From positions 124,001 to 188,000 of the IMG/VR virus record IMGVR_UViG_3300044972_002389: a stretch of DNA of 64,000 bases; one strand, 5' to 3'. The notes beneath the pieces were generated by a model that ran no database searches, was not told the origin of the DNA, and was given only the letters and a program-made list of their open reading frames with translations. Numbering within the stretch: the stretch's first letter is position 1; every line of letters starts with the position of its first letter. The position numbers and the translations under genes are program-made. Shown here piece after piece: positions 48,438 to 62,721 of this stretch.

Positions 48438-48833
48438 TTAGATAATAGTGGTTTCAACATTTCTGCGATCAAAATCAATTTGGAAAACTTCCACAATATC
48501 CAACGGTTGGTAGTAGAGATCCATCTGGAGTTGCAGGCCATTGTCATATTCAGTAAGTTTGATATCTCGTATTTGAACTCGACCATCAGCTGCCACTATT
48601 TGATAGCAGTCGTCAATAATCATCTGCAGGTTGTCAGCCACCATGGGTTCAAATAACATGTCCCAAATTATTGATCCAAAGTCTGGGCGCATGACTCTTT
48701 CGCGTTTCCTTGTATAAAACGCATTAACCAAATCTCTCTTGATAAGATCAAGATCAGTGTATTGTGTTTGTTTGATACTGGTGTCCACTGAACTATAACC
48801 AATGAACAATCGGGTGCGGGGTGCTACTGCCAT
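48438..48833 (-). CDS. Baseplate wedge/sheath initiator (T4 gp25-like)
   Basis: DLIKRDLVNAFYTRKRERVMRPDFGS.IWDMLFEP. Confidence 0.88.
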   Translation of the reverse strand: MAVAPRTRLFIGYSSVDTSIKQTQYTDLDLIKRDLVNAFYTRKRERVMRPDFGSIIWDMLFEPMVADNLQMIIDDCYQIVAADGRVQIRDIKLTEYDNGLQLQMDLYYQPLDIVEVFQIDFDRRNVETTII

Positions 48834-48839
48834 AATACT

Positions 48840-48845
48840 TATTTA
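48840..48845 (-). promoter_or_regulatory. late promoter TAAATA
   Basis: 6 nt upstream of the gp25-like start. Confidence 0.55.
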
Positions 48846-48853
48846 GAGAAGAT

Positions 48854-48881
48854 TTGACACTCTAAAATCTTGCCACAAAAT
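48854..48881 (+). promoter_or_regulatory. sigma70-type promoter, divergent from the late block
   Basis: TTGACA-N16-CAAAAT; ATG after 5 nt. Confidence 0.5.
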
Positions 48882-48886
48882 AAGTG

Positions 48887-49390
48887 ATGAATAAAAAACA
48901 TTTGAGTTTTGATGATATTACTGTTCTTACCTACAGTCTTTGCGATAATATAGAGGCGTCAGGTTGGCAGCCCTCGATTGTTGTTGGCATTACTAGGGGT
49001 GGCCTCCTTACAGCCAAAATGTTGAGTCATTATTGGAAAGTGCCTATGTGCACAATTGATGTGAGCTTGCGGGACTATACCTTATGGAGCGAAGATTTCA
49101 ATACCAATTTGGTAATTGAGGCATTCAATGGTCACAATCTTCTTGTGGTTGATGATATAAACGACAGTGGTGCAACAGGGATCAAGATCAAAAACACTTG
49201 GACCACTGTAGTGAACAGTTTGCCAGAACATCAATCATTATGGCCCAAAAACAATATCAAATTTGGCGTGCTGTTGGAAAATGAAGTCAGCTCTCACCAA
49301 AGTGACTTTTGGGGCTCAAAAATCAACAAGGAACAAGATCCCATTTGGTATGTTTTTCCTTGGGAGATCCAACGGGGCAAGGGTGATTGA
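48887..49390 (+). CDS. Type I phosphoribosyltransferase (xanthine/hypoxanthine-like)
   Basis: VGITRGG, PRPP loop LVVDDINDSGAT, WYVFPWE. Confidence 0.88.
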   Translation: MNKKHLSFDDITVLTYSLCDNIEASGWQPSIVVGITRGGLLTAKMLSHYWKVPMCTIDVSLRDYTLWSEDFNTNLVIEAFNGHNLLVVDDINDSGATGIKIKNTWTTVVNSLPEHQSLWPKNNIKFGVLLENEVSSHQSDFWGSKINKEQDPIWYVFPWEIQRGKGD

Positions 49391-49586
49391 AAAAACACAC
49401 AATCTATTGTTTCCTTGGAGCGTGAGAATGAACTTTGATGTGGTGGATTGGACACCTATGGACCATTGGTGTGTAGAGCATTTTGGCAATGAAGGTGTGT
49501 TGTGGAGCATTGGTTGGGAGAATGGCACGTGGGATTTTCAAAAATTTGAGGATGCAATGATGATGTGGCTGACATGGGTGAGATAA
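49383..49586 (+). CDS. Trp-rich family member
   Basis: WCVEHFG ... FQKFEDAMMMWLTWV. Confidence 0.8.
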   Translation: MIEKTHNLLFPWSVRMNFDVVDWTPMDHWCVEHFGNEGVLWSIGWENGTWDFQKFEDAMMMWLTWVR

Positions 49587-49900
49587 TTGAAGATTGGAGC
49601 GTTTCTGCAGATCTCTGCTGTCCGCTAAGCTTGGATCGTGATAGATTGGATTGTGAACTGGCTTTGTTGAAGTATCGCACAACCCAAGAAGTTCAAGACA
49701 ATCTCATACTTATCTATCTCAATATGCCAAGTTTGGGTTATCCCATTGGCCAATTGGAGTTGGTTAAAGAGTGGCGCACTATTCTCTGTGAAGAGCTTGT
49801 GAAACGGAAACCCATTCATTGGCGTCATTTCTTGAAAAGCCGTATGGACAAAAACGCTGCTGAGAAAACATCAGTTGACGAGCCCAGCCCTTCAGCGTAA
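49565..49900 (+). CDS. hypothetical protein
   Basis: Overlapping co-oriented ORF. Confidence 0.55.
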   Translation: MADMGEIIEDWSVSADLCCPLSLDRDRLDCELALLKYRTTQEVQDNLILIYLNMPSLGYPIGQLELVKEWRTILCEELVKRKPIHWRHFLKSRMDKNAAEKTSVDEPSPSA

Positions 49901-49922
49901 GTTATCAAGGGACACGGAAGGA

Positions 49923-50381
49923 ATGATTATGACCAAAGGTGAGCTGCTAGGCAAGTGTTTGGTTTTTGCCACCAACGCACATGCTGGTCAGTTTGACAAG
50001 GGAGGTGCTCCATATTTGCTCCACGTCCTAAAGGTTATGCACTATTTGCGCACCGAGGACGAAGAGCTGCAATGCATTAGTTTGCTCCACGACGTGTGTG
50101 AAGATACTGATGCCACCTACGCTGATCTCAGAGATATTGGCTGCACCGAGCGTGTGATTGCGGGCGTGAGGGCACTGACCAAAGTGCCGGGTGAAACACT
50201 CGACGAATACAAGGCTCGAGTTTTCGCCAACCCCGATGCCATGCGTGTGAAAAAGTGCGACCTGCGTCACAACTCGGATATCCGGCGCTTGAAAGGTGTC
50301 ACAGAGAAGGACATTCGGCGCATGGCTCGCTACCATGAGTTTTACCTGGAGATTTGCGAGCGACTCAAGCTAGCTGATTGA
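49923..50381 (+). CDS. HD-domain phosphohydrolase (Mesh1/SpoT-hydrolase-like)
   Basis: AHAGQFDKGGAPYLLH, LLHDVCED, VKKCDLRHN. Confidence 0.85.
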   Translation: MIMTKGELLGKCLVFATNAHAGQFDKGGAPYLLHVLKVMHYLRTEDEELQCISLLHDVCEDTDATYADLRDIGCTERVIAGVRALTKVPGETLDEYKARVFANPDAMRVKKCDLRHNSDIRRLKGVTEKDIRRMARYHEFYLEICERLKLAD

Positions 50382-50405
50382 CAATCCAATCAATACTGCT
50401 ATAGT
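50378..50405 (+). promoter_or_regulatory. sigma70-type early promoter
   Basis: TTGACA-N16-TATAGT preceded by TGC. Confidence 0.75.
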
Positions 50406-50426
50406 GCTGGGGAAAGGAACACGCTG

Positions 50427-51014
50427 ATGATCACCATTGTGAAAAAGTCCACACAAAATCGTCGAGCACTCTTGGGCCAAACTGGTAAACAGTTTGTGAG
50501 AATGTCGGGCGATGCCGTGCGCTCCATTGTGGAGAAAAATACTTTTGATCCCACTTTGGCTTTTTGGGTTCATTGGTACAATCAAGCACCTGCCCTTGAT
50601 TTCGATGCAACTGCGCTCACACCAAAGCAATGCCAAGATTTGATTGAGCTTGTGACGTTGCAGACCAAAAAAGATCTTGAAAATATTCTCAAGTATCTTG
50701 ATGAGATCAGGCTAGATCAAGAATATTGGCGCACCGTGTCAGAAAAGCTGAGCCAAGGGCTTGAACCACCCAACGCCCCATATTTCTTTTGGGACCCGCC
50801 TGTCGGCATCCCAGACTTCTCCCGGTGGACGCAAGCTGATGCGCCAAATCAAGAGTGGCTGGAACATGTAGACAATCGCCTCAAGAGACTGAAGGTAGTT
50901 GAGCGCGACTACCGCAAGTCAGCCAGGCTCCACCAGGATCGCTTGAACGACACATACATTTGGGCAGATGTGCAGACCGAAACTGTGCGCACCACTGTCA
51001 TCACTCCAGTTTGA
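50427..51014 (+). CDS. hypothetical protein
   Basis: AAGGA RBS. Confidence 0.7.
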   Translation: MITIVKKSTQNRRALLGQTGKQFVRMSGDAVRSIVEKNTFDPTLAFWVHWYNQAPALDFDATALTPKQCQDLIELVTLQTKKDLENILKYLDEIRLDQEYWRTVSEKLSQGLEPPNAPYFFWDPPVGIPDFSRWTQADAPNQEWLEHVDNRLKRLKVVERDYRKSARLHQDRLNDTYIWADVQTETVRTTVITPV

Positions 51015-51021
51015 GGGTCAC

Positions 51022-51840
51022 ATGAGCAAGGACAGTCTTGGCGACAGGATGAAGCTGCTGGAACAGCAGGAAACTGATCGACGCTTCCTGTTCAGCTTGC
51101 CCATCTATGCGCGTATTGACGGACGGGGCTTCAGCAAGTTCACCAAGGACATGGAGCGACCTTACGACACTGGCATGACCACTAGCATGATCGAAACCAC
51201 TCGAACCTTGGTGGAGAAAACCCAAGCTACTCTCGGGTATGTTCAAAGTGACGAGATCAGCTTGGTGTGGGTGCCCACAGGCAATGGCCATGGTTGGTTT
51301 GATGGCAAGATAACCAAGATGACCAGTGTGCTGGCTGGCCTGGCCACAGCAGCATTCATTGAGAATGTTATTCAGTATTTTCCCAACTGGCAGCAGCTGG
51401 TGCTCCGCCTGCCGCACTTTGATGCAAGAGTCATCAGCATGCCCAGTTTGAGTGAGACGGCGAACATGTTACTTTGGCGCAATCTTGATTGTGCCAAAAA
51501 TTCCGTGAGCATGGCTGCCCATCACTATCGCAGCCACAAAGAGCTGCAAGGCCTAGATCAAAAACAGCAACAGGAACTCATTTGGCAAAGTGGCGTCAAC
51601 TGGAGCTCATATCCCGCAGCATTCAAGCGAGGAACTTGGGTACGTCGACGTGTAGTGCAACGCACGTTGAATGACTCTGAGCTGGGGTTGATTCCGGAAA
51701 ACTACAGGCCAGATCCCGGCACACTGTTTGCCCGGAGCGAGGTGCAAAGCTATGATCTGCCTCCTCTCAATCGAGTCACAAACCGAGTGGCTGTGCTGTT
51801 TGAAGACGCACCGCCTGAATACAAAACAGATAACCCTTGA
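51022..51840 (+). CDS. tRNA-His guanylyltransferase Thg1-like 3'-5' polymerase
   Basis: LGDRMK, RIDGRGFSKFT, YVQSDEISL, FDARV, FKRG. Confidence 0.9.
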   Translation: MSKDSLGDRMKLLEQQETDRRFLFSLPIYARIDGRGFSKFTKDMERPYDTGMTTSMIETTRTLVEKTQATLGYVQSDEISLVWVPTGNGHGWFDGKITKMTSVLAGLATAAFIENVIQYFPNWQQLVLRLPHFDARVISMPSLSETANMLLWRNLDCAKNSVSMAAHHYRSHKELQGLDQKQQQELIWQSGVNWSSYPAAFKRGTWVRRRVVQRTLNDSELGLIPENYRPDPGTLFARSEVQSYDLPPLNRVTNRVAVLFEDAPPEYKTDNP

Positions 51841-51864
51841 CATACTCTCTGCCACTGCTATAAT
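51837..51864 (+). promoter_or_regulatory. sigma70-type early promoter
   Basis: TTGACA-N16-TATAAT preceded by TGC. Confidence 0.85.
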
Positions 51865-51889
51865 CCGCGCATACAAAGGAGACAGGTTG

Positions 51890-52834
51890 ATGGGCAGCTG
51901 GAACGAAACTTGTGGGATCACACGCTTGCCCATCCATTCAGGCGATCCTGTGGTGCTGATCATGTTGAGCCAGGTCACTGACTCTGGTGGTGCTGATGGC
52001 GCTTGCTATGCCAGCCACTACTGGAAGCCCTATGCGCTCCCGCTACGTGCAGTCTACAACGACTACGGTGGTATTGAAGATGTGGGCACAGAGTGGAATC
52101 AACGCTGGATCCTGGGCAAAACTCGCGAAAGCATGGAGAGCATGCCAGAGGGAGAAAATCCCTACCACGAGCCCGCTGTGGATCCACTACAGCTTGACAG
52201 CATGGAAACCCTCATGGAGTGGATTCGATCTGATCGGGTGTGGGTGAGAGGTGCTCGCAATCCCCGGGGCGGTGGGCATCTCCTGGGCTGGACCATGTGC
52301 CACGCTTGGGCATGGGACCATCTAGCCCAGCAGAGTGAACACTGGAATGGCGATGTGACCACACTGGAGATGAACTACAAGCGGGGTCAGGAACGCTACC
52401 GCAGCCTCTTCAAGCTGGCACAGGATCACCCGGATGGTATGAACTTTGAGATGGCTTATTGGCGCTGGCGGGACACCCACTCCCTACGGGATCACTGGGC
52501 TGCCTTGCTAACTGGAGGCAGCAGCTTTGAAAGCTATGGTGGTGCCACAACTGGCATCCGCTCTTACGCTGATCTCATGCGGCTGTGGGCAGTGGCAGGA
52601 CGTGACGTCGATCATCCCGAAGTTGACGACTTTCTCCGGGAGATGAGTGCCTTTCTGTTGGTATCAGACAACATGTGTGGACTGCGCATGACATGGCACC
52701 CGCAAACTGGCAAGGGCAGTCAGTGCGCCGAATACCCTCTCTACAAAAGTTTTTTTCTTCGCTGCCAGCAGCATGTGGACCTGATGCTGAACGGTGGCGA
52801 CGATGATGACTGCGACACTGATGACACTCTATAA
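51890..52834 (+). CDS. conserved hypothetical phage protein
   Basis: AAGGAG RBS; MGSWNETCGIT...YNDYG. Confidence 0.75.
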   Translation: MGSWNETCGITRLPIHSGDPVVLIMLSQVTDSGGADGACYASHYWKPYALPLRAVYNDYGGIEDVGTEWNQRWILGKTRESMESMPEGENPYHEPAVDPLQLDSMETLMEWIRSDRVWVRGARNPRGGGHLLGWTMCHAWAWDHLAQQSEHWNGDVTTLEMNYKRGQERYRSLFKLAQDHPDGMNFEMAYWRWRDTHSLRDHWAALLTGGSSFESYGGATTGIRSYADLMRLWAVAGRDVDHPEVDDFLREMSAFLLVSDNMCGLRMTWHPQTGKGSQCAEYPLYKSFFLRCQQHVDLMLNGGDDDDCDTDDTL

Positions 52835-52858
52835 CCTCAAAAACAAGGAAACCGTGCT

Positions 52859-53275
52859 GTGAACAACCTCAGCCTTCTCATCTACCTTGCTGGCGTAACA
52901 GGCAGTATTGGTAGCTTTCTGGTATTTGTTGCTGTTCTGTTTGGATTTGGAATAGCAGTCTGCGGTGTCGTTTGGGTCGTAAGTCTTGACGCTACCAATT
53001 TCCGCACTGTGGAATATGCCAATCACGTCAAAATCCACAGCTGGCGCTGGCTTTGGGCGTTTTTGGTGCTGATGATTTTTGTTGGTAGTGTGTCAGCACT
53101 GGTGCCCAGCCGACAGACAGTGCTGCTGATTGCTGGCAGTGAGATGGGCGAGCGAGTGCTCAATCACCCACGCTTCAACCAAGTTGTGGATCCTGGACTA
53201 GAGCTGGTGACAACCTGGATGCAAAAAGAAACGGCTGAGATCCGCCGGAGCATGGATCCTACCAAAAAGCAGTAA
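52859..53275 (+). CDS. membrane protein
   Basis: Two to three TM segments; PSRQT motif. Confidence 0.75.
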   Translation: MNNLSLLIYLAGVTGSIGSFLVFVAVLFGFGIAVCGVVWVVSLDATNFRTVEYANHVKIHSWRWLWAFLVLMIFVGSVSALVPSRQTVLLIAGSEMGERVLNHPRFNQVVDPGLELVTTWMQKETAEIRRSMDPTKKQ

Positions 53276-53279
53276 TAGG

Positions 53280-54107
53280 CTAGCCCAGCTGGCCCAGGCT
53301 GGTGACAAATCCCGGGCGCCCGGGCTGGTTGTGCAGGATGAACTCGCTTTGTCCTGCACGATCGGTTATCCAGATGATGCTGTTAACAGGTATGTCAGCT
53401 TGCAGGACTTTCTCAAGCTTGCGGTCTCTCTTTTGCAACAGCTCAGTGATCCAAGTTTGGTCTTCTCGGAACTGCTCCTCTAAATCGTCCCCATCAGTTA
53501 TCATGTCACCATCGCTGTCAAAGATGTGATAATAATAAGGGTCTAGGTCAGGGTCATTGGTGGGCTCATCAGTGCGCACATATTGTTTCCCTCTCCAAGT
53601 GACTTTGCCCTTTTGGTTATACTCTTGCACTGCTTGTTGAATAGCCTGATCAGTTATGGGCTTGACCTTCATGAGCCTGGGATCTACTCCTGCAAACCAA
53701 GCTGCAACGCGGGGGTCACTTGTCCAGCTGAGTGTGTGCCGGGGACCACCTTTGTCACCCACAGGGGTTTGAGCTCGATAGAGACGTATGGTGTCGCCAA
53801 ACTTCCTCCGCAAGGCCGCTTGCACTGGCCTAAAACTCTGCTCCAGGCTGGCTCGGATCCGTTGGCCCCGCTCACTTGGCTGTGGGCTGTAGGCATCTTC
53901 CAGTTGAGCACTTTTCATGATTCCGCCCCACATGCCCTTGTTTTGGGCATCCGGTGGCACTCCTACAAATCCCTCTAGGGCATCAGCAGCCTCTCCGGTC
54001 AAACTGTCATCAGCTTGGTCCACTAGATTTTTGATGCCCAACTGCTCAACGCTGATGTTGGAGAAGCTTTCCCGTAGGATCCGGGGATTGAGATCTGTTA
54101 TACGCAT
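53280..54107 (-). CDS. Putative ADP-ribosyltransferase-fold late protein (Alt-like, possibly head-packaged)
   Basis: R-S-E-like motifs IRLYRAQ, LSWTSDPRVAAWFA, QSEFIL; N-terminal MRITDL..ILRE; TAAATA upstream. Confidence 0.55.
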   Translation of the reverse strand: MRITDLNPRILRESFSNISVEQLGIKNLVDQADDSLTGEAADALEGFVGVPPDAQNKGMWGGIMKSAQLEDAYSPQPSERGQRIRASLEQSFRPVQAALRRKFGDTIRLYRAQTPVGDKGGPRHTLSWTSDPRVAAWFAGVDPRLMKVKPITDQAIQQAVQEYNQKGKVTWRGKQYVRTDEPTNDPDLDPYYYHIFDSDGDMITDGDDLEEQFREDQTWITELLQKRDRKLEKVLQADIPVNSIIWITDRAGQSEFILHNQPGRPGFVTSLGQLG

Positions 54108-54111
54108 GGGA

Positions 54112-54117
54112 TATTTA
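54112..54117 (-). promoter_or_regulatory. late promoter TAAATA
   Basis: 4 nt upstream of the ATG at 54107. Confidence 0.55.
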
Positions 54118-54129
54118 CGCAAAAAATGG

Positions 54130-54158
54130 TTGACAGGCCAGCCTCCTTGTGCTACATT
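54130..54158 (+). promoter_or_regulatory. sigma70-type early promoter
   Basis: TTGACA-N17-TACATT preceded by TGC. Confidence 0.75.
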
Positions 54159-54183
54159 CCTTACTGTAAACAAGGAGGCTGCT

Positions 54184-54378
54184 GTGAGCGATGAACCCCA
54201 ACTGGATGGCATGATCCCACTTTCTGCCCTAGCAGATTTCCTCCGTGATCATCTCACCGTTGAGGTGGAGGTGTATGAGGAGAACTACAGCCAAGGCTAC
54301 GTTACCACTGAGGTCACCATTAAGTTGGGTGACATTGTGATCACCAGGGGCTCGGACAACCACAACTACACGCGCTAA
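54184..54378 (+). CDS. hypothetical protein
   Basis: AAGGAGG RBS, GTG start. Confidence 0.7.
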   Translation: MSDEPQLDGMIPLSALADFLRDHLTVEVEVYEENYSQGYVTTEVTIKLGDIVITRGSDNHNYTR

Positions 54379-54403
54379 CAGGCGATTTTTTCAGAACAAA
54401 TGG

Positions 54404-54432
54404 TTGACAGGGTGGTCAACCCATGCTAGTAT
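54404..54432 (+). promoter_or_regulatory. sigma70-type early promoter
   Basis: TTGACA-N17-TAGTAT preceded by TGC. Confidence 0.7.
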
Positions 54433-54460
54433 GCCTACATAAGCTAAAGGACGTAGAGAG

Positions 54461-54655
54461 ATGCAAGTTTCCGAGCTGATTGAACGGCTGCAAACCTTGA
54501 AGGAGCAGCACGGCGATGTTCCTGTGATGGTAGGCAATGACGATGGCGACGTATGGGATTGCATTATTGCTACCCATTATGTAACAGAGCAAGATGAGTT
54601 TCCCAGCAACTGGAACATGCCAGAAGGCTTTGAGTTTATCAAGCTCAGCAACTGA
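54461..54655 (+). CDS. hypothetical protein
   Basis: MQVSELIERLQ...HGDVPV phage small-protein pattern. Confidence 0.7.
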   Translation: MQVSELIERLQTLKEQHGDVPVMVGNDDGDVWDCIIATHYVTEQDEFPSNWNMPEGFEFIKLSN

Positions 54656-54667
54656 AGGATCAAGATC

Positions 54668-55096
54668 ATGGACATCACTGCATTTGGCAAGACCCAACCG
54701 CTGGAACAGCATCTTTGGGAGATTGCCAACACCCGGCGAGATGAGTTTCCCAAGGATGTGATCAACCTCATGCTGGCAGCCTACTCTGTCATCGAAAGCC
54801 AAAAGATTTTCATCCAGCAAGGTGACGAGCGTGAGGCTCGGATAAACACCCAGCTCAATGCCAAGCTGGACCAACTGCTGAGTTGTGTGGATCAGCCTCG
54901 TTGGTTGGTGCAGGGCACGGTGAGCGTGAGCCACTACATGCAAGATGGGCGCGAGCAGAGAGTTGAGACCCTGGTGGTGCTGGCTGACACTGAGCAGGAA
55001 GCCTGTGACAAGTTTGTGGCTCATTGGGAGAGCAAGACCTCAGAATATGCCGTCTACTACACTGCCTGGGCTGACAAGGCCCATCAAACTGGTTGA
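54668..55096 (+). CDS. hypothetical protein
   Basis: AAGGA RBS. Confidence 0.7.
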   Translation: MDITAFGKTQPLEQHLWEIANTRRDEFPKDVINLMLAAYSVIESQKIFIQQGDEREARINTQLNAKLDQLLSCVDQPRWLVQGTVSVSHYMQDGREQRVETLVVLADTEQEACDKFVAHWESKTSEYAVYYTAWADKAHQTG

Positions 55097-55120
55097 CACT
55101 GACTAGAGTTATGCTACAGT
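55093..55120 (+). promoter_or_regulatory. sigma70-type early promoter
   Basis: TTGACA-N16-TACAGT preceded by TGC. Confidence 0.75.
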
Positions 55121-55148
55121 GCCAGAGACAGAGTAAGGACCTTTGCCC

Positions 55149-55310
55149 ATGACAGTAATCCGAGAAACATGCGAACTTTGTGAGCATAACAGGCTCTGCT
55201 ATTGCAGATCATGTGATTTGAGTGGCGAGCCCAACCCAGAAGCTTTCACCAGAAATGAACTGGTAGAGGCACTAATCTCCTACTACAGGGCCCCAAGGAC
55301 CGCTGAGTAA
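55149..55310 (+). CDS. small Cys-rich protein (53 aa, not in the ORF track)
   Basis: MTVIRETCELCEHNRLCYCRSCDL...; AAGGA RBS; TAATG overlap with the next gene. Confidence 0.6.
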   Translation: MTVIRETCELCEHNRLCYCRSCDLSGEPNPEAFTRNELVEALISYYRAPRTAE

Positions 55311-55702
55311 TGAAACTTCTTCGATTCCGCGAGAAGCATGGCGATCGAGTTTTCCTTTTCAAAACCAAAGAGGAACTTCAGCTGATCCTAGCGCAGGTTG
55401 CACAGGAAAGGCTGGACGAAGGCTATTGGTATGACACTGAGAATGGCAGTGATCAGGTTGACAGGCTGTGGCCCATGCGGCATCTCAGTGATGCGGACAA
55501 GATCGCACTTCTGCTCAAGAGGCTGCACGACCCTTCTGCCCGGCCCAACACCAACCCTACCAGCTATTATCTGCACCAGGTTGCGCAATGGATGCGAGCT
55601 CGCCGGGACTATGAGTATGAGGGCTGGGATGAACTGCCTGTCGAACAGTGTCAACTCACCCACTACGAGGGCAGCGTGCGTCGCACCAGCTCTGCAACAT
55701 AG
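55310..55702 (+). CDS. hypothetical protein, paralog A
   Basis: Clear colinear similarity to 56220-56633. Confidence 0.8.
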   Translation: MKLLRFREKHGDRVFLFKTKEELQLILAQVAQERLDEGYWYDTENGSDQVDRLWPMRHLSDADKIALLLKRLHDPSARPNTNPTSYYLHQVAQWMRARRDYEYEGWDELPVEQCQLTHYEGSVRRTSSAT

Positions 55703-55713
55703 AGGTTGATATC

Positions 55714-55901
55714 ATGAAAACACTGGCTAGGTTTGGTGTTTGAATGGAGTGTGGACAAGAACAATGTGCTGTGGATCAGCCCAAACCAAACTCGCAAGCA
55801 AGCTTTTTTTTGATCAACATCAAGCGGAGATCCAGCGCCTCACTCGGGAGGCTATCCAATCCATCTCTGCCAAAATCATTGCGGTGAACAACAACCCATA
55901 A
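55714..55901 (+). pseudogene. Disrupted region: MKTLARFGV* stub plus a downstream frame broken at a T8 run (55804-55811)
   Basis: Stub resembles MRTLARFAI at 56643; LVFEWSVDK...QAFF joins DQHQAEIQ...NNNP* if one T is removed. Confidence 0.5.
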
Positions 55902-55907
55902 GAGTCG

Positions 55908-55935
55908 TTGACAATCGTCTGTGGTGTGCTACACT
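55908..55935 (+). promoter_or_regulatory. sigma70-type early promoter
   Basis: TTGACA-N16-TACACT preceded by TGC. Confidence 0.75.
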
Positions 55936-55964
55936 AGGCACAGGAAACAAATGGGAGACATGCT

Positions 55965-56192
55965 GTGAAGAAACGTGTTGTTGTCACTTTGGAACTGATT
56001 TACGACCATCCCGAGACTGTGACAGTGCGTGGCAAACAGGTGGCCTATCCCTTTGATGTAGGCTATGTGTTGAGCGAGATCAAGGGCACGCTAGAATGCA
56101 GCGACTATGGTGTTTGGGGCCTGCAGAAGGTGAACGGCGGCTGTGTGAGTCACCTGCAACTTGTGCTAGCTGACGACATTGTTGACGAGTAA
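55965..56192 (+). CDS. hypothetical protein
   Basis: GGGAG RBS, behind a promoter. Confidence 0.6.
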   Translation: MKKRVVVTLELIYDHPETVTVRGKQVAYPFDVGYVLSEIKGTLECSDYGVWGLQKVNGGCVSHLQLVLADDIVDE

Positions 56193-56219
56193 TTCACTCA
56201 TCACACAAGGAACCCTCTG

Positions 56220-56633
56220 ATGCGACTGATTCGATTCCGCGAGAAGCATGACGACCGTGTGTTTGTTTACTCCACAGGATTGGAGAAGCAGCTGATCCTT
56301 GCCCAAGTGGCACAGGAACGCTTGCAGGACGGCACTTGGTATGATGATGAGAATGGCAGCGATCAAGTTGATCTCCTCAAGCCCAAGACTCATCTCAGCG
56401 ACGCGGAACGGATTGGCCAACTGCTGGAGAAGCTCTTTGATCCCAGCAACCGTAGCGATGCTAGCAAGGCATACAAGCTAGGTGAGCTCACTTATTATCT
56501 CGGCCTGGTCGAGCGTTGGATGGGTGGCCGCAGGCACTATGAATACGAGGATTGGGACGAGCGACCGGTTGACGCCCTAGAGCTCAAATGCCACCAAGGC
56601 AGTGTGCGCCGTAATACCAACCGGGAAGATTAG
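56220..56633 (+). CDS. hypothetical protein, paralog B
   Basis: Shares RFREKH, QLILAQVAQERL, ENGSDQVD, HLSDA, YEYE with 55310-55702. Confidence 0.8.
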   Translation: MRLIRFREKHDDRVFVYSTGLEKQLILAQVAQERLQDGTWYDDENGSDQVDLLKPKTHLSDAERIGQLLEKLFDPSNRSDASKAYKLGELTYYLGLVERWMGGRRHYEYEDWDERPVDALELKCHQGSVRRNTNRED

Positions 56634-56642
56634 GAAAACACC

Positions 56643-56963
56643 ATGCGAACTCTAGCCCGCTTTGCCATCCGCCCTGCTGACAACCAGTATTCAAAGGGTG
56701 ACCTTATCCTGGGCGCCATGTGTGAGGAACACGCCACCAACCTTCTCAAGCCCAACCATGTGTATGAGATCCGCGAGATTGATGGTGTGCTCACTATAGC
56801 GGACATGGGCGAGAGTGCCATGGGCATGTATCCTGTTGAAGCCCGGGTAGACAGTCCTCTGAGGGGGCAGGTATCGCGTGTGGGTTGGTTCAACGAGATA
56901 GGCCATTTGTTGAGCGTGGGCGATGGCCAGCACTTGGTGACCCGAGAGGAGATAGGCAGGTAG
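56643..56963 (+). CDS. hypothetical protein
   Basis: AGGA RBS. Confidence 0.7.
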   Translation: MRTLARFAIRPADNQYSKGDLILGAMCEEHATNLLKPNHVYEIREIDGVLTIADMGESAMGMYPVEARVDSPLRGQVSRVGWFNEIGHLLSVGDGQHLVTREEIGR

Positions 56964-56981
56964 GCTGCGGGGAAAAACTGG

Positions 56982-57009
56982 TTGACAGCGCCCTGCATCG
57001 TGCTATAAT
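56982..57009 (+). promoter_or_regulatory. sigma70-type early promoter
   Basis: TTGACA-N16-TATAAT preceded by TGC. Confidence 0.85.
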
Positions 57010-57035
57010 GCGCACACAAGCAAGGAGCCGACCTT

Positions 57036-57590
57036 ATGAGCCGCGGAAAATATAGCCCTGCAACTCCTCGCAAGAACAGTGACGCACGCATGAAGCTCGA
57101 CGCGGTCGAACAGTTCGATCGCAACGCCTATGGTGAGGTTCCCTCTCCCTACCAGGCAGGGGTTGACCAATATGATGAGAAGATCCATTTCGTCAACTAT
57201 GACGAGTGGGGCTACGACAGCTATGGCTACTCGGCCTGGCTTGAGGATGGCACGTTTGTTGGCCTTGGGCAAGGTGTAGACAGGCTGGGCTACACTGAGG
57301 ATGACTACATCACCATGAGAGATGATGAGTGGGAGGATGTGTGCTGGAGCATTGATCCTGCGGTGTTCAAGCTTCCTTGCCCTGGTATCACACTCCGCCA
57401 AACTCCCCGGGCCATTCTCAGCCAGCTTGAAGGAGAGATTCAGCATATTTTGAACCGTGCTGAGGATGAGATCAAAAAGGCAAAAGAAATAGGGTATCAC
57501 ACCGAACTGTTTCACCAGCAAGGTCGACAGAGTGCTGCCAACGAGCTGCTTAAGGTTGTGGTTCGCCTACAGAAAGAACAAAACGGTTGA
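57036..57590 (+). CDS. hypothetical protein
   Basis: AAGGAG RBS; YDEWGYDSYGY...GVDRLGY. Confidence 0.75.
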   Translation: MSRGKYSPATPRKNSDARMKLDAVEQFDRNAYGEVPSPYQAGVDQYDEKIHFVNYDEWGYDSYGYSAWLEDGTFVGLGQGVDRLGYTEDDYITMRDDEWEDVCWSIDPAVFKLPCPGITLRQTPRAILSQLEGEIQHILNRAEDEIKKAKEIGYHTELFHQQGRQSAANELLKVVVRLQKEQNG

Positions 57591-57614
57591 CAGCCCCTTG
57601 AGCTGTGCTATAAT
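57587..57614 (+). promoter_or_regulatory. sigma70-type early promoter
   Basis: TTGACA-N16-TATAAT preceded by TGC. Confidence 0.85.
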
Positions 57615-57641
57615 GGGCATATAGAGACAGGAGCACGGGAC

Positions 57642-58055
57642 ATGAGCAAGAAACTGGAAGTAGGCGACGTGTTTGAGGCCTGCAAGAACATGAGTGTTTA
57701 TGCCAAAATCCCCAGCCACTTTGCCTATGTCAACCGGCCCAACGATCCCACTCCTGCAAAAACTGAGGTGCGAGTGGGATGCCTCATGTGGCGAGACGAT
57801 CATGCACTGGATCTCGGCTACCTCAAGGGTCGCTATGTGGTGGAGCATGCTCGGAGTGAGGGCGGCGGCACTGGTCACGGACCCCATGACATTTACCCCG
57901 ACGGTTGGCACATCCGGGCTCGCAAGCTGAACGTAGATGGCAGCTACAATGCCACTGGTGTAGAGATCGAGTTCTACCAGAGCGGTGCGTTCACTGTGGT
58001 GAACAAGGATGTGCCCGTGGTAGGCAAGCTGCACCGGATTTTTGTGGCTGAATAG
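57642..58055 (+). CDS. conserved hypothetical phage protein
   Basis: GGGTGHGPHDIYPDGW...IEFYQSG.F. Confidence 0.75.
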   Translation: MSKKLEVGDVFEACKNMSVYAKIPSHFAYVNRPNDPTPAKTEVRVGCLMWRDDHALDLGYLKGRYVVEHARSEGGGTGHGPHDIYPDGWHIRARKLNVDGSYNATGVEIEFYQSGAFTVVNKDVPVVGKLHRIFVAE

Positions 58056-58067
58056 ACAAAAAAGCGG

Positions 58068-58095
58068 TTGACAGCAGGCCAAACCCTGCTATAAT
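58068..58095 (+). promoter_or_regulatory. sigma70-type early promoter
   Basis: TTGACA-N16-TATAAT preceded by TGC. Confidence 0.85.
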
Positions 58096-58123
58096 GGGCA
58101 CACAGAGAGAGGAAGCAACACCA

Positions 58124-58378
58124 ATGTTCAAGTTCGAGCTGGACCAGACTGTCTACTATCTCATGGACAACCGGGTGTGCAGTGCTCCGGTGTTGTGCCG
58201 CATGCTGGTGGAGAATCAGCATCCCAAGTGGAATGCCACCGACAAGCAGGCGGAGTTTTTCCAGCGTTTTGGTCCCTGCCGTGTGGTGTATGCCACCTGC
58301 CATGGAGAGCATGAAGAAGCCATGCTGTTTGAGAGCCGCGAGGCACTGGCTGCTGCCATCATTGCGGAACAGATCTAA
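58124..58378 (+). CDS. hypothetical protein
   Basis: GAGGA RBS. Confidence 0.7.
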   Translation: MFKFELDQTVYYLMDNRVCSAPVLCRMLVENQHPKWNATDKQAEFFQRFGPCRVVYATCHGEHEEAMLFESREALAAAIIAEQI

Positions 58379-58617
58379 TGACTGCTGAAGGAAAAGTGCT
58401 GTATCAGCGGAATACAATGGGCTATTGGATCTTGCGACATCCATCAGGGTTGTATCCTGTTGATACAACACAGGGTTTTTGGAGTAATCATAGGGTGGCA
58501 GCCATGAGATTCCACACAAAAGAGGAAGCTGATGCCTGTGCTGCCTATCTCTCCACGAGTGTTATAAGCGGGATCAAATGTAACATGCTCTTGGTGGAGA
58601 TGTTGTTTCAGATGTAA
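58378..58617 (+). CDS. hypothetical protein
   Basis: TAATG overlap. Confidence 0.55.
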   Translation: MTAEGKVLYQRNTMGYWILRHPSGLYPVDTTQGFWSNHRVAAMRFHTKEEADACAAYLSTSVISGIKCNMLLVEMLFQM

Positions 58618-58657
58618 ACAACGCTTTTGGTATCAATATCTAACCCACGGGGTAATT

Positions 58658-59134
58658 ATGAACGGCGCCGGACATGCAGACTACTGTAACATACGAATCA
58701 GTCGAGAAGGGCTAGCACGCGGCAAGCTCGAGCTAGTGCATCGATATGTAATCTACTTTGCACGACAGTATGTGACTGATTATCTTACAGGAACTGTAAG
58801 CGGAGCACATCTCAAGATTGGCCAAAGCACTTTGTTCAATTCGCTGCAACGTGGCCGAAACCAAGCGGGTGGTGATTTTAGAATTCTAGCTGAGCTGTGT
58901 TTTCAATCAGCTGATGCTGCCAAACAGGCAGAAAAATATGCTCATTATCTTTTCATGAACGATCAGGTACGCGGTCCGCAAAATCAGCAAGAATTGTTCA
59001 ACATCCCTGATCAAGATGTTGAAACCCGTGCAAAGGCGCTGATTGCCTATTGCACCACCAACAATGATCATCCGTTGCCTTTTGTTGAGGCCCTGTTGTT
59101 TACAGGCGGACAAGAAACCGTGGATATTATCTGA
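58658..59134 (+). CDS. hypothetical protein, weak T5orf172/GIY-YIG-like pattern
   Basis: YVIYF...LKIGQS...R..Q...AE..AH..F...ELF. Confidence 0.45.
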   Translation: MNGAGHADYCNIRISREGLARGKLELVHRYVIYFARQYVTDYLTGTVSGAHLKIGQSTLFNSLQRGRNQAGGDFRILAELCFQSADAAKQAEKYAHYLFMNDQVRGPQNQQELFNIPDQDVETRAKALIAYCTTNNDHPLPFVEALLFTGGQETVDII

Positions 59135-59141
59135 GGCAGAC

Positions 59142-59408
59142 ATGAGCAAAAATCCCACTTCCAACCAAATCATCTCTTGGGTCAAAGCCGAAGCGCAAGC
59201 TCGCCTAGACAATGCTGGTTATTCTGGACGTTATGATGATGGTGGATACGGCGCTCTGCTGCGTGAGGTAGAGGCTTATCAAGCCGGCCAGGCCGGCACA
59301 GTGCCAGGCTCTTGGGAACCCATCATTGAGAAACATGTTCGGCAGCAGGATGCTGAGTATCAAGAGTATCTCAGGCTAGCCAACAAGTTTGGTCCACCAA
59401 AAAATTAA
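59142..59408 (+). CDS. hypothetical protein
   Basis: GAGG RBS. Confidence 0.7.
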   Translation: MSKNPTSNQIISWVKAEAQARLDNAGYSGRYDDGGYGALLREVEAYQAGQAGTVPGSWEPIIEKHVRQQDAEYQEYLRLANKFGPPKN

Positions 59409-59411
59409 GGC

Positions 59412-59439
59412 TAGACATAAAACAGCATCCTGCTATAAT
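59412..59439 (+). promoter_or_regulatory. sigma70-type early promoter
   Basis: TAGACA-N16-TATAAT preceded by TGC. Confidence 0.75.
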
Positions 59440-59466
59440 GCCCACATAGAGAAAAGGAACCCAGCC

Positions 59467-60141
59467 GTGAGTGACGAAATTGATCGCTTGCTGAAGTTTG
59501 ACCCACTGGACACAGCTGAGCGCATGCTGGGCCGCAACAATCCCGATAGTGTCAACCTTGGTATGGCGCTGCACGTCAGCCACAACCAGCGCAAGCAAAG
59601 GGCTCTAGAGGAGTTGGGCGACACCACCTTCAGCAACCGGCTGGTTCGCTACCAGGAGATCATCACCCTCATGGGTTTTGAGTTGGCGCTGGAGCTGCCC
59701 TTTGTGGTACGGGGATACGACAGCACTGATCCCGATCGTGAAGAACGCTATTTCATCTACGCTCACCGGGACGGGCTGCTGCTGTGTTTCGACACCTTCT
59801 GCGGTGACCATGTGAACGGTGCAAAAGTCTACTACAACTGGATTCCTCACAGCGGCACAGACCGTTGGTGCTACACCAGCAGCGGGCATTTTGAGGGCTA
59901 TGTAGACCAGGAAAATCCCGGTGTGTGGTGTGGCGACCATGATGCTCGCGAGGCACTGCGCCACAAGATCCAAGGCCTGCAGAGTGCTGGCGATCTCCTG
60001 CCCCAGTGGAGGCATCGTCCTTGGCTTTGGTTGCTGCACTACCAGGACACCAAGGACACCAACTACGATCATGCAGCCATCACCCAGAGCCGTATCAAGA
60101 TGTGCCCCGAGTGGGTGCAAAACATGATTGGCGCAGTATGA
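59467..60141 (+). CDS. hypothetical protein
   Basis: AAGGA RBS, GTG start. Confidence 0.75.
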   Translation: MSDEIDRLLKFDPLDTAERMLGRNNPDSVNLGMALHVSHNQRKQRALEELGDTTFSNRLVRYQEIITLMGFELALELPFVVRGYDSTDPDREERYFIYAHRDGLLLCFDTFCGDHVNGAKVYYNWIPHSGTDRWCYTSSGHFEGYVDQENPGVWCGDHDAREALRHKIQGLQSAGDLLPQWRHRPWLWLLHYQDTKDTNYDHAAITQSRIKMCPEWVQNMIGAV

Positions 60142-60172
60142 AGCAGCACACGTTGATCTACTGAAAAAGTCC

Positions 60173-60201
60173 TAGACACAACTCAGCAACCTTGCTATAG
60201 T
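60173..60201 (+). promoter_or_regulatory. sigma70-type early promoter
   Basis: TAGACA-N17-TATAGT preceded by TGC. Confidence 0.7.
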
Positions 60202-60229
60202 CACACAACAGTTGAAAGAAACACACCCT

Positions 60230-62206
60230 ATGACAGCTGATTTCCCCAGCTTCAGCACTGCTGTAGCCAATCGAGTCAAGAGCCTCAGCCAGCATGAGCT
60301 GTATGTGGTAGAGGGTATTGACCTCTTCACCAGCTACCTGCTGAGTTTTCCCGAGGGCACTGACCCCATGTTCCGGGTTCGCACCACGCATGACTGCTCT
60401 TGCTGCAAGAACTTTGTGCGCAACATGGGCGGTGTGGTGGCTATCGTCAACGGCCGCAAGGAAAGCGTGTGGAGCGTTCCCAACCTCCCCGAGCCCTATG
60501 CCACTGTGGCTGCGGCCATGGATGCACTAGTGCAACAGCTTCCCATCAAAAGCGTGTTCCGCACCAAGGAAACTCGCTTTGGTGCCTCACACACCTATGA
60601 CAGTGACAACCGACGCTGGGACCACTTCCATGCTGAGGTGGCAACTCGTCACCGCTGTGCTCGTCCCGACGAAGAGCGAGGCAGCATCAACACCACTGCT
60701 CAAGTGCTGCGTCGCGGCCTAGACACCTTGGGTGACGACACCTTCCAGACAGTGCTGGACCTCATCGACAGCAACGCCCTCTACCGTGGTAGTGAGCACC
60801 GTCGAGCTGTGCAGGAGTTTCAAAGCCTCCAGCGTGCCTACCGTGCCTCAGGTGACGGCAGCCTGCATGTGTGGAGCAACGTCGGCAACCCTGTGGCACG
60901 CTTTCGCAACACGGTGATTGGCACGCTGATCCAGGACCTCAGTGATGGTGTGGACCTCGAGCGTGCCGTGCGCGGTTTTGAGCAGAAGGTGGCCCCCACC
61001 AACTACAAGCGCACCACTGCACTCATCACGCCTGCCATGGTCACCAAGGCAGTGGAGAAGTTGCGTGAGCTGGATCTGGAGCGGAGCATCGAGCGGCGGT
61101 TTGCCCGACTGGAAGATGTGAGTGTCAACGACGTGCTGTTTGTGGACAACAGTGTGCAGGCACAGATGCGAGATGGTCTCACCAGCCTGCTCATGGAGGC
61201 AGTCGGCTCAGCGCCGCCCAAGAACGTGAGTGGTGTCACTGGCATCCCGGTGGCTGAGTTTGTGAGCGATGTGCTGCCCAAGGCGCGCCGAGTTGAGGTG
61301 CTGCTGAAGAATCAGCACCTGGGCAACTTTGTGAGCGTGACTGCACCTGTGCATGTGCATGTGGATGCTGGTCGGCTGTTCCGCTGGAACAACGATTTTG
61401 CGTGGAGCTATGATGGCGAGGTCGCAGACAGCATCAAGGCTCGTGTCAAGCGGGCAGGTGGCAACACCAATGCAGCACTCCGAGTGAGTTTGGCCTGGAG
61501 CAACTATGACGACCTTGACATCCATGCTCACTGCCCTGACGGTCACATCTACTACGGCAACCCTGGGCGCATCCTGGACGTGGACATGAATGCAGGCCGA
61601 GGCACCACTCGAGAGCCTGTGGAGAACCTCAGCTGGACTCGTCCGCTTGATGGTGTCTACCGCATTCAGGTCAACCAGTTCAGTCAGCGTGAGACTGACA
61701 ACGTGGGCTTCACACTGGAGATTGAGTGCGAGGGCAAGGTCTCTCAGCTGAGCTATCCACTAGGTGTCAAAGGCACGGTGGACTGCATCACCTTCCAGAT
61801 GGTGCGTGGCGAACTCACTGATCTCAAGATTGTCAACAAGTCAATCCGAGGCGGTGACGTGTCAACCCAGAAGTGGGGTGTGGCTACGGAAAACTTTGTG
61901 CCGGTCAGCACGCTGATGTGCAGTCCCAACCACTGGGAAAACGCAGGCGGTGTGGGCAACCAGCATTGGTTCTTCATCCTGGAAGGCTGCAAGAATCCCG
62001 AGGCCACTCGAGGCATCTACAACGAGTTCCTGCGAGGCGACCTCGAGCCTCATCGCAAGGTGTTTGAGGTGCTAGGCAACAAGACCAAGTGTGCACCCTC
62101 AGATCAGCAACTCAGTGGCGTGGGCTTCTCACGTGGACGCAACGACGAGGTCACTGTGCGAGTCTCAACCAACAACTCAACTCGTGCCTACAACATCATT
62201 TTTTGA
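60230..62206 (+). CDS. large conserved hypothetical phage protein (HDCSCC motif; YfaP/DUF2135-like beta domain)
   Basis: HDCSCCKNF; LRVSLAWSNYDDLDIH...LDVDMN...PVENLSW. Confidence 0.75.
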   Translation: MTADFPSFSTAVANRVKSLSQHELYVVEGIDLFTSYLLSFPEGTDPMFRVRTTHDCSCCKNFVRNMGGVVAIVNGRKESVWSVPNLPEPYATVAAAMDALVQQLPIKSVFRTKETRFGASHTYDSDNRRWDHFHAEVATRHRCARPDEERGSINTTAQVLRRGLDTLGDDTFQTVLDLIDSNALYRGSEHRRAVQEFQSLQRAYRASGDGSLHVWSNVGNPVARFRNTVIGTLIQDLSDGVDLERAVRGFEQKVAPTNYKRTTALITPAMVTKAVEKLRELDLERSIERRFARLEDVSVNDVLFVDNSVQAQMRDGLTSLLMEAVGSAPPKNVSGVTGIPVAEFVSDVLPKARRVEVLLKNQHLGNFVSVTAPVHVHVDAGRLFRWNNDFAWSYDGEVADSIKARVKRAGGNTNAALRVSLAWSNYDDLDIHAHCPDGHIYYGNPGRILDVDMNAGRGTTREPVENLSWTRPLDGVYRIQVNQFSQRETDNVGFTLEIECEGKVSQLSYPLGVKGTVDCITFQMVRGELTDLKIVNKSIRGGDVSTQKWGVATENFVPVSTLMCSPNHWENAGGVGNQHWFFILEGCKNPEATRGIYNEFLRGDLEPHRKVFEVLGNKTKCAPSDQQLSGVGFSRGRNDEVTVRVSTNNSTRAYNIIF

Positions 62207-62219
62207 AAGGACACCCAAC

Positions 62220-62624
62220 ATGAACGATCTTTTTGTTACCGCTTCTCGACAGGCTTGGCGCTTTCCCAGCACTCGTGGCGAGCTCACCACCGAGCAACTG
62301 TGGAGCATGCCACTCCTAGCCAAGAATGGCTTTGACCTCAACTCCGTGGCTCGGGGCCTCAACCAAGAGGTCAAGGACCTAGGCGAGGAAAGCTTTGTGG
62401 AAACACGGAGCAACCCTGCTCGCTCCACTGCTGAAGGCAAGCTGGAACTGGTCAAATCCATCATCGCTGTGCGACAGGAAGAGAACCGGCTGGCCGAGCA
62501 GCGTGCCCAGCGTGCTGTGGAGCGTGCTCGCATCCTGGATGCACTGGCAGCTCGCGAATCCGAAGAGCTCACCAAGGCCAGCAAGGATGAGCTGCTGGCC
62601 CGCCTGGCCCAGCTGGACGGCTGA
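62220..62624 (+). CDS. conserved hypothetical coiled-coil protein, partner of the upstream gene
   Basis: RFPSTRGELTTEQLWSMPL; AAAGGA RBS. Confidence 0.8.
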   Translation: MNDLFVTASRQAWRFPSTRGELTTEQLWSMPLLAKNGFDLNSVARGLNQEVKDLGEESFVETRSNPARSTAEGKLELVKSIIAVRQEENRLAEQRAQRAVERARILDALAARESEELTKASKDELLARLAQLDG

Positions 62625-62630
62625 TTGCTC

Positions 62631-62664
62631 AAGTGAGGGGTGTGACCGTGCCCCTCACTTTTTC
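62631..62664 (+). terminator. Rho-independent terminator
   Basis: AAGTGAGGGG-N10-CCCCTCACTT-TTT. Confidence 0.85.
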
Positions 62665-62666
62665 TC

Positions 62667-62694
62667 TTGACTCAGTCTATGTCTGTGCTACTAT
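62667..62694 (+). promoter_or_regulatory. sigma70-type early promoter
   Basis: TTGACT-N16-TACTAT preceded by TGC. Confidence 0.7.
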
Positions 62695-62721
62695 GCCTAT
62701 TGACACGCAAGAGGTGAGAAC

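Follow-up and report, generated by a model that had tools for sequence, protein, structure and literature searches.

A predicted R-S-E ADP-ribosyltransferase encoded by an antisense gene with a late-type promoter in a freshwater T4-like jumbo phage

This study concerns a 64,000-nucleotide (nt) stretch of phage DNA from IMG/VR record IMGVR_UViG_3300044972_002389 (hereafter the window) and, within it, one minus-strand gene which runs against a long series of plus-strand genes and encodes a protein of 275 amino acids (aa). The protein is very probably an ADP-ribosyltransferase (ART) of the R-S-E structural class (C2/C3/VIP2/Alt-like), as judged from structural models and an invariant catalytic triad, and its promoter makes it likely that the gene is transcribed late in infection. 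On the sequence features described below, we regard packaging of the protein in the phage head and its injection into the host as evenly balanced. The complete account, in which a late-made R-S-E mono-ADP-ribosyltransferase is delivered by the head and acts early in the next host, is the one that we cautiously favour.

Results and discussion

Structural models and active-site residues

The AlphaFold model of the window protein (mean predicted local distance difference test score, pLDDT, of 80) was compared with 48,161 PDB-cluster representatives. The ten best matches were all ARTs: CPILE-a, a Listeria ART-ARH toxin, VIP2, Vis, C3bot2, two Certhrax structures, C2-I, C3stau2 and C3larvin, with Z values of 5.4-6.8 over ~135 aligned residues, where it should be kept in mind that a structural Z below 8 can reflect a common arrangement. 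Structures other than ARTs matched the helical insert of the model alone, and were generic helical hairpins. For an insert-free homolog (P0111, model pLDDT 89), the top 26 structural matches were ART-fold proteins, the best having a Z of 6.8 vs 3.0 for the best unrelated chain, and the top 23 Foldseek matches were again ARTs. C2/C3/VIP2-type ARTs therefore topped the searches with both models, as expected from the ART-like effector proposed in an initial annotation of the sequence. Foldseek searches of the AlphaFold DB clusters gave weak, mostly unnamed matches with a TM-score below 0.4, and family-library scans with insert-free or multidomain homologs found no R-S-E ART family, only nothing or noise above E 0.003.

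The best matches of both models (CPILE-a 5gtt, VIP2 1qs1, C3bot2 1r45, Vis 4xzj and Certhrax 4fxq) align over 131-146 residues, and have an N-terminal helical lobe and a split beta-sheet in common with the phage protein, at 7-14% sequence identity. Unlike these toxins, the phage protein lacks both a secretion signal and a binding component, occurs in a phage context, and contains an extra insert between the serine and glutamate motifs.

The active-site residues were examined in an alignment of 102 diverse domain sequences, which are 25-61% identical to the query and have a mean column identity of 19%. R111, S127 and E255 are the only invariant columns (102/102 each), while Q253 is kept in 100/102 sequences. 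In the model these three residues are at the positions of the canonical ART arginine, serine and catalytic glutamate, with E255 as the first residue of the strand 255-259, directly after the loop D-R-A-G-Q-S. The motifs LYRAQ, LSWTS and QSEFIL, which had been read in this order from the sequence alone, hence contain the invariant core of the whole family. We consider the ART assignment well secured, since two models and two aligners agree and the triad is invariant. It could be argued that the fold is ART-like and catalytically dead, with a structural or scaffolding role like that of the ART-like domain of anthrax lethal factor; this domain is indeed among the matches (Z 5.1-5.2), and a fold by itself shows no function. 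The strict invariance of R, S and E and the near-invariance of Q across the 102 sequences are, however, the signature of a maintained active site, which makes a dead enzyme highly improbable.

Distribution of the family

The window protein has 44 close homologs (41-99% identity), none labelled as anything other than 'hypothetical protein'. An exhaustive search gave 212 representative clusters (clustered at 50% identity) at E ≤0.001. In 46 of the 148 representative clusters listed, the protein is at least 1000 aa long (the largest 7334 aa), and the domain is internal. Pfam scans of 11 large representatives found modules of the type seen in polyvalent proteins in seven, and nothing in the other four. 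These modules include SLT in P0051, LPD1 in P0054, ddrB-ParB in P0058, InPase in P0068, and InPase with an SNF2-like helicase and a HATPase domain in P0084, while P0112 has a peptidase C39 with weak MuF and GNAT matches. The window protein itself is a single-domain protein, and so lacks the two or more disparate effector domains that define a polyvalent protein.

Polyvalent proteins also contain another ART family, ART-PolyVal (PF18760), which occurs in the same kind of giant multidomain proteins of phages and conjugative elements. ART-PolyVal belongs to the Tox-ART-HYD2 clade and has an H-Y-D active site (PMC5512222), whereas the family described here has R-S-E and no Pfam match even at E up to 10. 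The two are found side by side in P0063, with the present family at residues 661-924 and ART-PolyVal separately at 1028-1154.

The only homologs in cultured phages are those of Sinorhizobium phage phiM9 (Sm_phiM9_063) and Rhizobium phage RHph_I1_18 (EVB91_003), which are 25-27% identical to the window protein and both annotated as hypothetical. The phiM9 copy has kept R, S and E, with S-K-E in place of Q-x-E, and its gene is located 1.5 kb upstream of that for the large terminase. Both phages could serve as experimental models.

From sequence comparison this is an unannotated family, of which the new elements are the family itself, its QxE motif, the insert, its presence in polyvalent proteins and the leaderless-type promoter described below; later surveys (PMC9503650) may hold it under another name. 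Tentatively, and with less confidence than in the ART assignment, we describe it as an R-S-(Q)xE family of at least 212 clusters, not described before, that may exist in two forms: a module of polyvalent proteins, and an internal head protein that stands alone, in T4-like jumbo phages from fresh water. The latter form would have a capsid-targeting peptide, a leaderless late transcript and a non-arginine target, possibly nucleic acid.

The insert and the choice of target

The region between S127 and E255 is extended by an insert (Table 1), with helices at residues 153-166 and 209-231 and a stretch of low pLDDT at about residues 180-200. The initial annotation had noted an acidic insertion of ~80 aa here, which is real and acidic, but is ~93 aa in length. 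Its T-D-x-D loop is partly conserved (T204 in 83/102, D205 in 77/102 and D207 in 54/102 sequences), and the insert is missing from 12 of the 138 full-domain homologs. As most members have the insert and some lack it, it is likely to be accessory, and its location just before the loop resembling the ADP-ribosylating toxin turn-turn (ARTT) loop suggests a role in target recognition. The insert-free relatives provide a natural comparison for that role.

In R-S-E ARTs the ExE motif is arginine-specific, while QxE goes with non-arginine acceptors: C3 exoenzymes have QxE and act on Asn, and the pierisin/ScARP/Scabin group acts on guanine. With QxE instead of ExE, the target of the phage enzyme may differ from that of T4 Alt, and need not be arginine or RNA polymerase. 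The target may even not be a protein, as the enzyme could ADP-ribosylate nucleic acid (bases or termini of DNA or RNA) or simply hydrolyse nicotinamide adenine dinucleotide (NAD+), by either delivery route, i.e. whether it is brought in with the virion or made in the cell; such an activity could blunt NAD+-dependent host defence or stop host nucleic-acid metabolism. This would agree with the near-invariant Q253 in the place of the first glutamate of the arginine-specific motif, with the appearance of Scabin among the structural matches (Z 3.1), and with the location of the domain beside DNA-directed modules (ddrB-ParB and the SNF2-like helicase) in polyvalent proteins. The best structural matches, however, are protein-modifying ARTs (iota, C2, VIP2, C3, Vis and Certhrax), with nucleic-acid ARTs much lower, and neither the family-library nor the PDB profile searches linked the sequence to DarT, the pierisin group or RES domains. 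We therefore think a non-protein target improbable, though far less so than a dead enzyme.

A late-type promoter in an early region

Directly upstream of the ART gene is a TAAATA box, the −10 element of T4-type late promoters (Table 1). TAAATA is not a frequent hexamer in this DNA: there are 10 copies in the window vs 17.8 expected, and 35 in the record, in which most permutations of the same letters are commoner. It is the position of the boxes that rules out a chance hexamer, and not their number, which is below expectation: of the 35 boxes in the record, 21 (60%) have a called ATG on their own strand 4-39 nt beyond their end, compared to 47/931 (5%) for the permuted hexamers, a 12-fold enrichment, and each of the five minus-strand boxes in the window precedes a gene start on that strand. 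Among the genes that follow a box are those for the portal, the prohead protease, the hub and wedge of the baseplate, the gp25-like protein, two tail fibres and a virion structural protein, and also several for homing endonucleases; T4 homing endonucleases can also have late promoters. As the genome encodes a gp55-type late sigma factor (phrog_12791, E 1.5e-76; phrog_234, E 8e-19; the direct match to T4 gp55 is weak), a T4-type late promoter with the core TAAATA is the simplest reading. The late-type promoter which the initial annotation had assigned to the ART gene is in this way upheld at sequence level by the placement of the boxes, the structural genes behind them and the sigma factor.

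The boxes fall into two spacing classes. Where the box is 17-39 nt before the ATG, the sequences read have a Shine-Dalgarno-like stretch in between, whereas in the second class a spacing of 4-7 nt leaves no room for one. The ART gene belongs to the second class, together with the boxes at 13028 and 48845 in the window (its own is at 54117) and, outside the window but numbered in its orientation, those at −5493, 81390, 89042, 107225 and 113282. T4 late transcripts begin a few bases after the box, and from the 4 nt spacing the ART mRNA is therefore predicted to be leaderless or nearly so. The short-spacing boxes as a group suggest a set of leaderless late mRNAs.

The box is kept upstream of the ART homolog in all five lineages examined (the window, L003, L005, L006 and L008). 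Its distance to the ATG is 4 nt in the window, 7 nt in L003 and 5 nt in both L006 and L008, where in L008 the gene caller had chosen a longer open reading frame (ORF) which reads through the box; in L005 the box ends 41 nt before a TTG startcodon. In a 94.6%-identical relative, the match covers the gene and the box and stops at 54123, 6 nt upstream of the box. Nothing further upstream is kept with the gene, which suits a promoter without a −35 element. The same relative, represented by contigs from three runs, lacks the adjoining 962-bp block (54124-55085), which contains three small early genes.

The genes surrounding the ART gene show a very different promoter pattern. Between 48.8 and 64 kb of the window there are 23 σ70-like sites, vs 10.6 ± 2.8 in shuffled sequences. 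The 12 best are all on the plus strand, all but one have the extended −10 TG, four have a perfect TTGACA-16-TATAAT, and the σ70-like matches that were compared with the ORF list sit just 5' of plus-strand gene starts. In sequence terms this is the pattern of T4-type early genes that are read by unmodified host polymerase, in agreement with the initial annotation, which had called the ~15 kb of plus-strand neighbours early. The same 48.8-64 kb scan found no σ70-like promoter for the ART gene which, given this and its orientation against the early units, would be silent early in infection.

That the ART gene is truly alone on its strand was supported by codon usage, using a log-odds score trained on genes with homology support. 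The ART ORF scores +0.28 per codon, whereas the remaining minus-strand ORFs that were tested from 48.9 to 64 kb score 0 or below, apart from one 70-codon ORF at +0.015, and nearly all plus-strand ORFs of this region are positive. This separation bears out the 'lone antisense gene' noted before: it is the sole minus-strand ORF with a coding signal across 48.9-64 kb. The homologs in L003 (58% identical) and L005 (53%) are likewise the only gene on the opposite strand, there in an extended series of topoisomerase II, ribonucleotide reductase and glutaredoxin genes.

The N-terminal segment and head packaging

Residues 1-17 of the window protein have a pLDDT below 50 and are predicted to be disordered. 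The MRITDL..ILRE segment singled out in the initial annotation is present and conserved: in the 29 close homologs compared E13 is invariant (29/29), the third residue before the predicted cut is L, I, V or M, and E13 is followed by S, T or N. When the domain is embedded in a larger protein this segment is missing, the match there starting around residue 25. The T4 prohead protease gp21 cuts after (L/I)-x-E, and the conserved N-terminal [LIVM]-x-E fits this cleavage rule. A gp21-type protease is encoded in the record (Peptidase_S77 PF03420, 79.7 bits, E 1.3e-23; phrog_207), and a cut after E13 is predicted.

A similar peptide is found on T4 internal proteins IPII and IPIII, which according to the T4 record start with MKTYQEFIAE followed by A; in T4 this peptide targets them to the capsid and is cut off by gp21. 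This is close to a shorter variant present in the most divergent of our close homologs, MRYYEIIAE followed by S. The peptides of IPII/IPIII and the ART begin with M-[KR] and end with hydrophobic-x-E before a small residue, although the ART peptide is usually 13 residues long vs 10 in IPII/IPIII, and the protein bodies are unrelated.

Additional pointers to packaging come from the literature. Polyvalent proteins have been argued to be packaged in virions and to enter the host with the DNA (Iyer et al., PMC5512222), and ~44% of phage ARTs are reported to be in contexts suggesting head packaging (PMC9503650).

The alternative is an enzyme that is made late and remains unpackaged, acting inside the producing cell. 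Late in infection it would modify proteins of the host or the phage, with translation, the timing of lysis, superinfection exclusion or a defence system as examples of what could be affected; like T4 ModA and ModB it would be intracellular, but on a late schedule. The fold, triad and late promoter fit this explanation as well as they fit delivery, and the gene lies outside the head module, with early genes as its neighbours here and topoisomerase or ribonucleotide reductase genes in relatives. It does, however, leave the conserved disordered peptide with the invariant E13 in [LIVM]-x-E without an obvious role, and it has to contend with the recurrence of the domain in polyvalent proteins and with the strand inversion conserved in several lineages, as an enzyme that is only needed late would not require strict exclusion from early transcription. 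We consider action in the producing cell rather unlikely, and delivery by the head remains the reading that we prefer.

The other late proteins were also searched for a shared targeting peptide, and this was rejected as a general feature since only one other ORF fits the strict pattern. This ORF encodes a 277-aa protein (L011:9934-10764, minus strand; 89055-89885, plus strand, in window orientation) with a late box 7 nt before the ATG, an N-terminus (MKQFELSPQLVFE) that fits the ART pattern, and indications of nucleotidyltransferase-like or DUF6267 relatives. Next to it is a late-box gene for a 739-aa protein (L011:7715-9931, plus strand; 89888-92104, minus strand, in window orientation) with DUF6267, cytidylyltransferase-like and Acb1 domains, and an N-terminus (MKLFDLLPVV…) which is loosely like that of the ART. 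The likeness of the N-termini may be coincidence, because these two neighbours appear to be related via their DUF6267-like part. Acb1 is a phosphodiesterase directed against the cyclic-oligonucleotide-based anti-phage signalling system (CBASS), and the 739-aa protein may be a late-made, perhaps packaged, anti-defence enzyme.

Comparison with T4 Alt

T4 Alt is a late-made, protease-processed and head-packaged ART that is injected with the DNA. Alt (NP_049811, 682 aa) and the window protein both come from T4-type phages with gp55-type late transcription and a gp21-type protease, and both genes are driven by a late promoter (for the ART gene, as predicted above). The motifs ITLYRSQ, FVSTS and EMEVIL of Alt correspond to TIRLYRAQ, LSWTS and QSEFIL in the window protein, with ITLYRGQ as the consensus of the ART family, and both proteins have a short N-terminal stretch ending in hydrophobic-x-E. 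Differences are the smaller size of the window protein, which is without the large N-terminal region of Alt, the QxE (QSEF) instead of ExE (EMEV) motif, the spacing from R to S (16 vs ~27 residues), and the 93-aa acidic helical insert before the ARTT-like loop. In profile comparisons with hhalign, the A2 profile of the family aligned with Alt residues 380-640 at a probability of 55% (E 1.2e-4, 82 columns, from the N-terminal helices to the R motif), while the shallower A1 profile reached a probability of only 2.4% over 18 columns. The Alt clade also has a conserved gene neighbourhood with baseplate genes (PMC5512222), unlike the ART gene, which 4.4 kb with early genes separate from the closest baseplate gene (gp25-like). 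The 'Alt-like' label of the initial annotation is retained with qualifications: the order of R, S and E and the late-type promoter agree with it, but the ExE motif and the baseplate neighbourhood do not, and the homology to Alt seen by hhalign is marginal. The computational checks of its interpretation, i.e. of the fold, the R-S-E core, the TAAATA box and the gp21-type protease, all agreed with what it had proposed. On these sequence comparisons the protein is Alt-like in its working outline, and not a demonstrated member of the Alt family.

Gene call and neighbouring genes

The positions of the features discussed here are given in Table 1. The coding sequence (CDS) of the ART gene starts with the ATG at 54107 and stops at 53282-53280, giving a protein beginning with MRITDL. 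The gene had initially been extended to 54117, which is incorrect as the end of the CDS, but is the first base of the TAAATA box. A longer reading of 310 aa from an ATG at 54212 was rejected, as the majority of homologs begin at the MRI/MKI methionine, and the conserved 'FLRKY' codons upstream are explained by their being the TAAATA box itself. An AAGGAGG sequence ~35 nt upstream was also rejected as a ribosome binding site, being too distant from the ATG and not followed by a startcodon in an open frame. The late box of the ART gene and the σ70-like promoter of the diverging plus-strand gene are both within the same intergenic region of 109 nt.

Table 1. Positions of the ART gene, its features and its cultured-phage homologs (window coordinates unless a locus is given)
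Feature	Position	Strand	Remarks
CDS of the ART-fold protein (P0001)	53280..54107	-	275 aa, stop included; ORF and translation
Codons 1-13, MRITDLNPRILRE, putative capsid-targeting/propeptide segment	54069..54107	-	predicted cut after E13
R111 codon (LYRAQ), ART beta-1 arginine	53775..53777	-	in model strand 106-112
S127 codon (LSWTS), ART beta-2 serine	53727..53729	-	in model strand 125-129
Insert, residues 140-232	53412..53690	-	lineage-specific; helical hairpin, small sheet, acidic loop with conserved T-D-G-D-D
Q253-S254-E255 codons, QxE motif	53343..53351	-	after ARTT-like loop DRAG
TAAATA box, T4-type late promoter -10 element	54112..54117	-	ends 4 nt before the ART ATG
σ70-like promoter of the diverging gene	54130..54158	+	TTGACA-17-TACATT with TG
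Sinorhizobium phage phiM9 homolog Sm_phiM9_063	L018 2812-3504		
Rhizobium phage RHph_I1_18 homolog EVB91_003	L019 1866-2567		

The plus-strand neighbours of the ART gene are small and mostly without annotation, and their promoters (48800-64000, plus strand) form an unusually clean set. Among these early genes are those for a Thg1-like tRNA-His guanylyltransferase (50968-51840, plus strand), of which the DNA resembles that of Caulobacter and Brevundimonas jumbo phages, and for an HD-domain protein of the HD_4 (ppGpp-hydrolase-like) type (49875-50381, plus strand). Two others are paralogs which match no family (55310-55702 and 56220-56633, both plus strand; MKLLRFREKHGDRVF… and MRLIRFREKHDDRVF…). 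In the phage contig L007, genes for a resolvase and a Cas12f1-like TnpB have been inserted (12886-14608) some 2 kb downstream of its ART homolog; this looks like a mobile element, as the near-identical sibling L006 is without these genes. In related phages (L008, 11201-11974 and 18105-18968; L005, 1020-1745) a SIR2 gene is located two genes downstream of the ART homolog, with an ADP-ribosylglycohydrolase gene ~7 kb beyond; these are further parts of an NAD+/ADP-ribose toolkit.

The source phage

The window comes from a viral record of 133.7 kb that is rated ~30% complete. An identical ART protein is encoded on a 328.6-kb contig, homologs are found on phage contigs of 452-460 kb (L003 and L005), and this DNA was met again in 20 or more metagenome runs from lake water. 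The T4-style morphogenetic genes of the record encode a gp25-like baseplate wedge protein (48438-48833), a tail fibre with an S74 chaperone domain, a 1126-aa baseplate wedge protein, a baseplate hub protein and a portal protein. The source belongs to the T4 superfamily and is a freshwater jumbo phage, with a genome of over 328 kb and thus larger than T4. Between the 1126-aa wedge gene and the tail-fibre genes there is a single ORF of 4017 aa (32939-44992, minus strand) without a Pfam match, presumably encoding a giant fibre or baseplate protein.

Proposed mode of action

In the account that we favour, host RNA polymerase carrying the phage gp55-type sigma factor would transcribe the ART gene from the TAAATA box late in infection, as a leaderless mRNA. 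The protein would be made alongside the head proteins, and its disordered M-R-I-T-D-L…I-L-R-E peptide would direct it into the prohead, where a gp21-type protease would remove the peptide after E13 to leave a mature enzyme of ~262 aa. This enzyme would then travel in the head, enter the next host cell with the DNA and, ahead of all phage gene expression, carry out NAD+-dependent ADP-ribosylation of a host macromolecule. NAD+ would be bound by R111 and S127, E255 would be the catalytic glutamate, and Q253 and the acidic helical insert would set the choice of target, for which QxE points to an Asn/Gln-type side chain or a nucleic-acid base and not to arginine.

Several observations weigh against this account. 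Pfam (E up to 10), NCBIfam and PHROG scans of the ART protein gave no match to an annotated family, the A1 and A2 profiles matched PDB sequences at chance level only (E ≥0.35), no structural match is strong singly (best Foldseek E 0.03-0.1, best Z 6.8), and the sequence likeness to Alt ends at the R motif. With regard to packaging, the [LIVM]-x-E tripeptide is short and common, the ART gene is not beside head genes in the record, and the hint from polyvalent proteins is guilt by association. The L006 and L008 homologs are on the same strand as their neighbours. Searches of the record, which is ~30% complete, for ADP-ribosylglycohydrolase and macro domains had no hits. Finally, a freshwater metatranscriptome contained one contig of 151 nt inside the ART gene (depth 2), from which no conclusion can be drawn, as the run was picked with the ART gene itself and DNA carry-over is possible.

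Conclusions

To our knowledge, T4 Alt is almost the sole studied example of a head-carried, injected enzyme that reprograms the host before phage gene expression. If the account given here is true, the family would provide a second kind of head-injected enzyme, distinct in sequence, widespread, and with a different specificity motif, a finding which fits the established Alt paradigm and does not overturn it. It would also assign an enzymatic function to a block that recurs, unnamed, in polyvalent proteins, and would correct the view, stated earlier, that these contain no R-S-E ARTs. Being small and stand-alone, the window protein should be easy to express and assay. The phage genome itself has a clear set of late promoters in two spacing classes, one of which implies that part of its late mRNAs may be leaderless.

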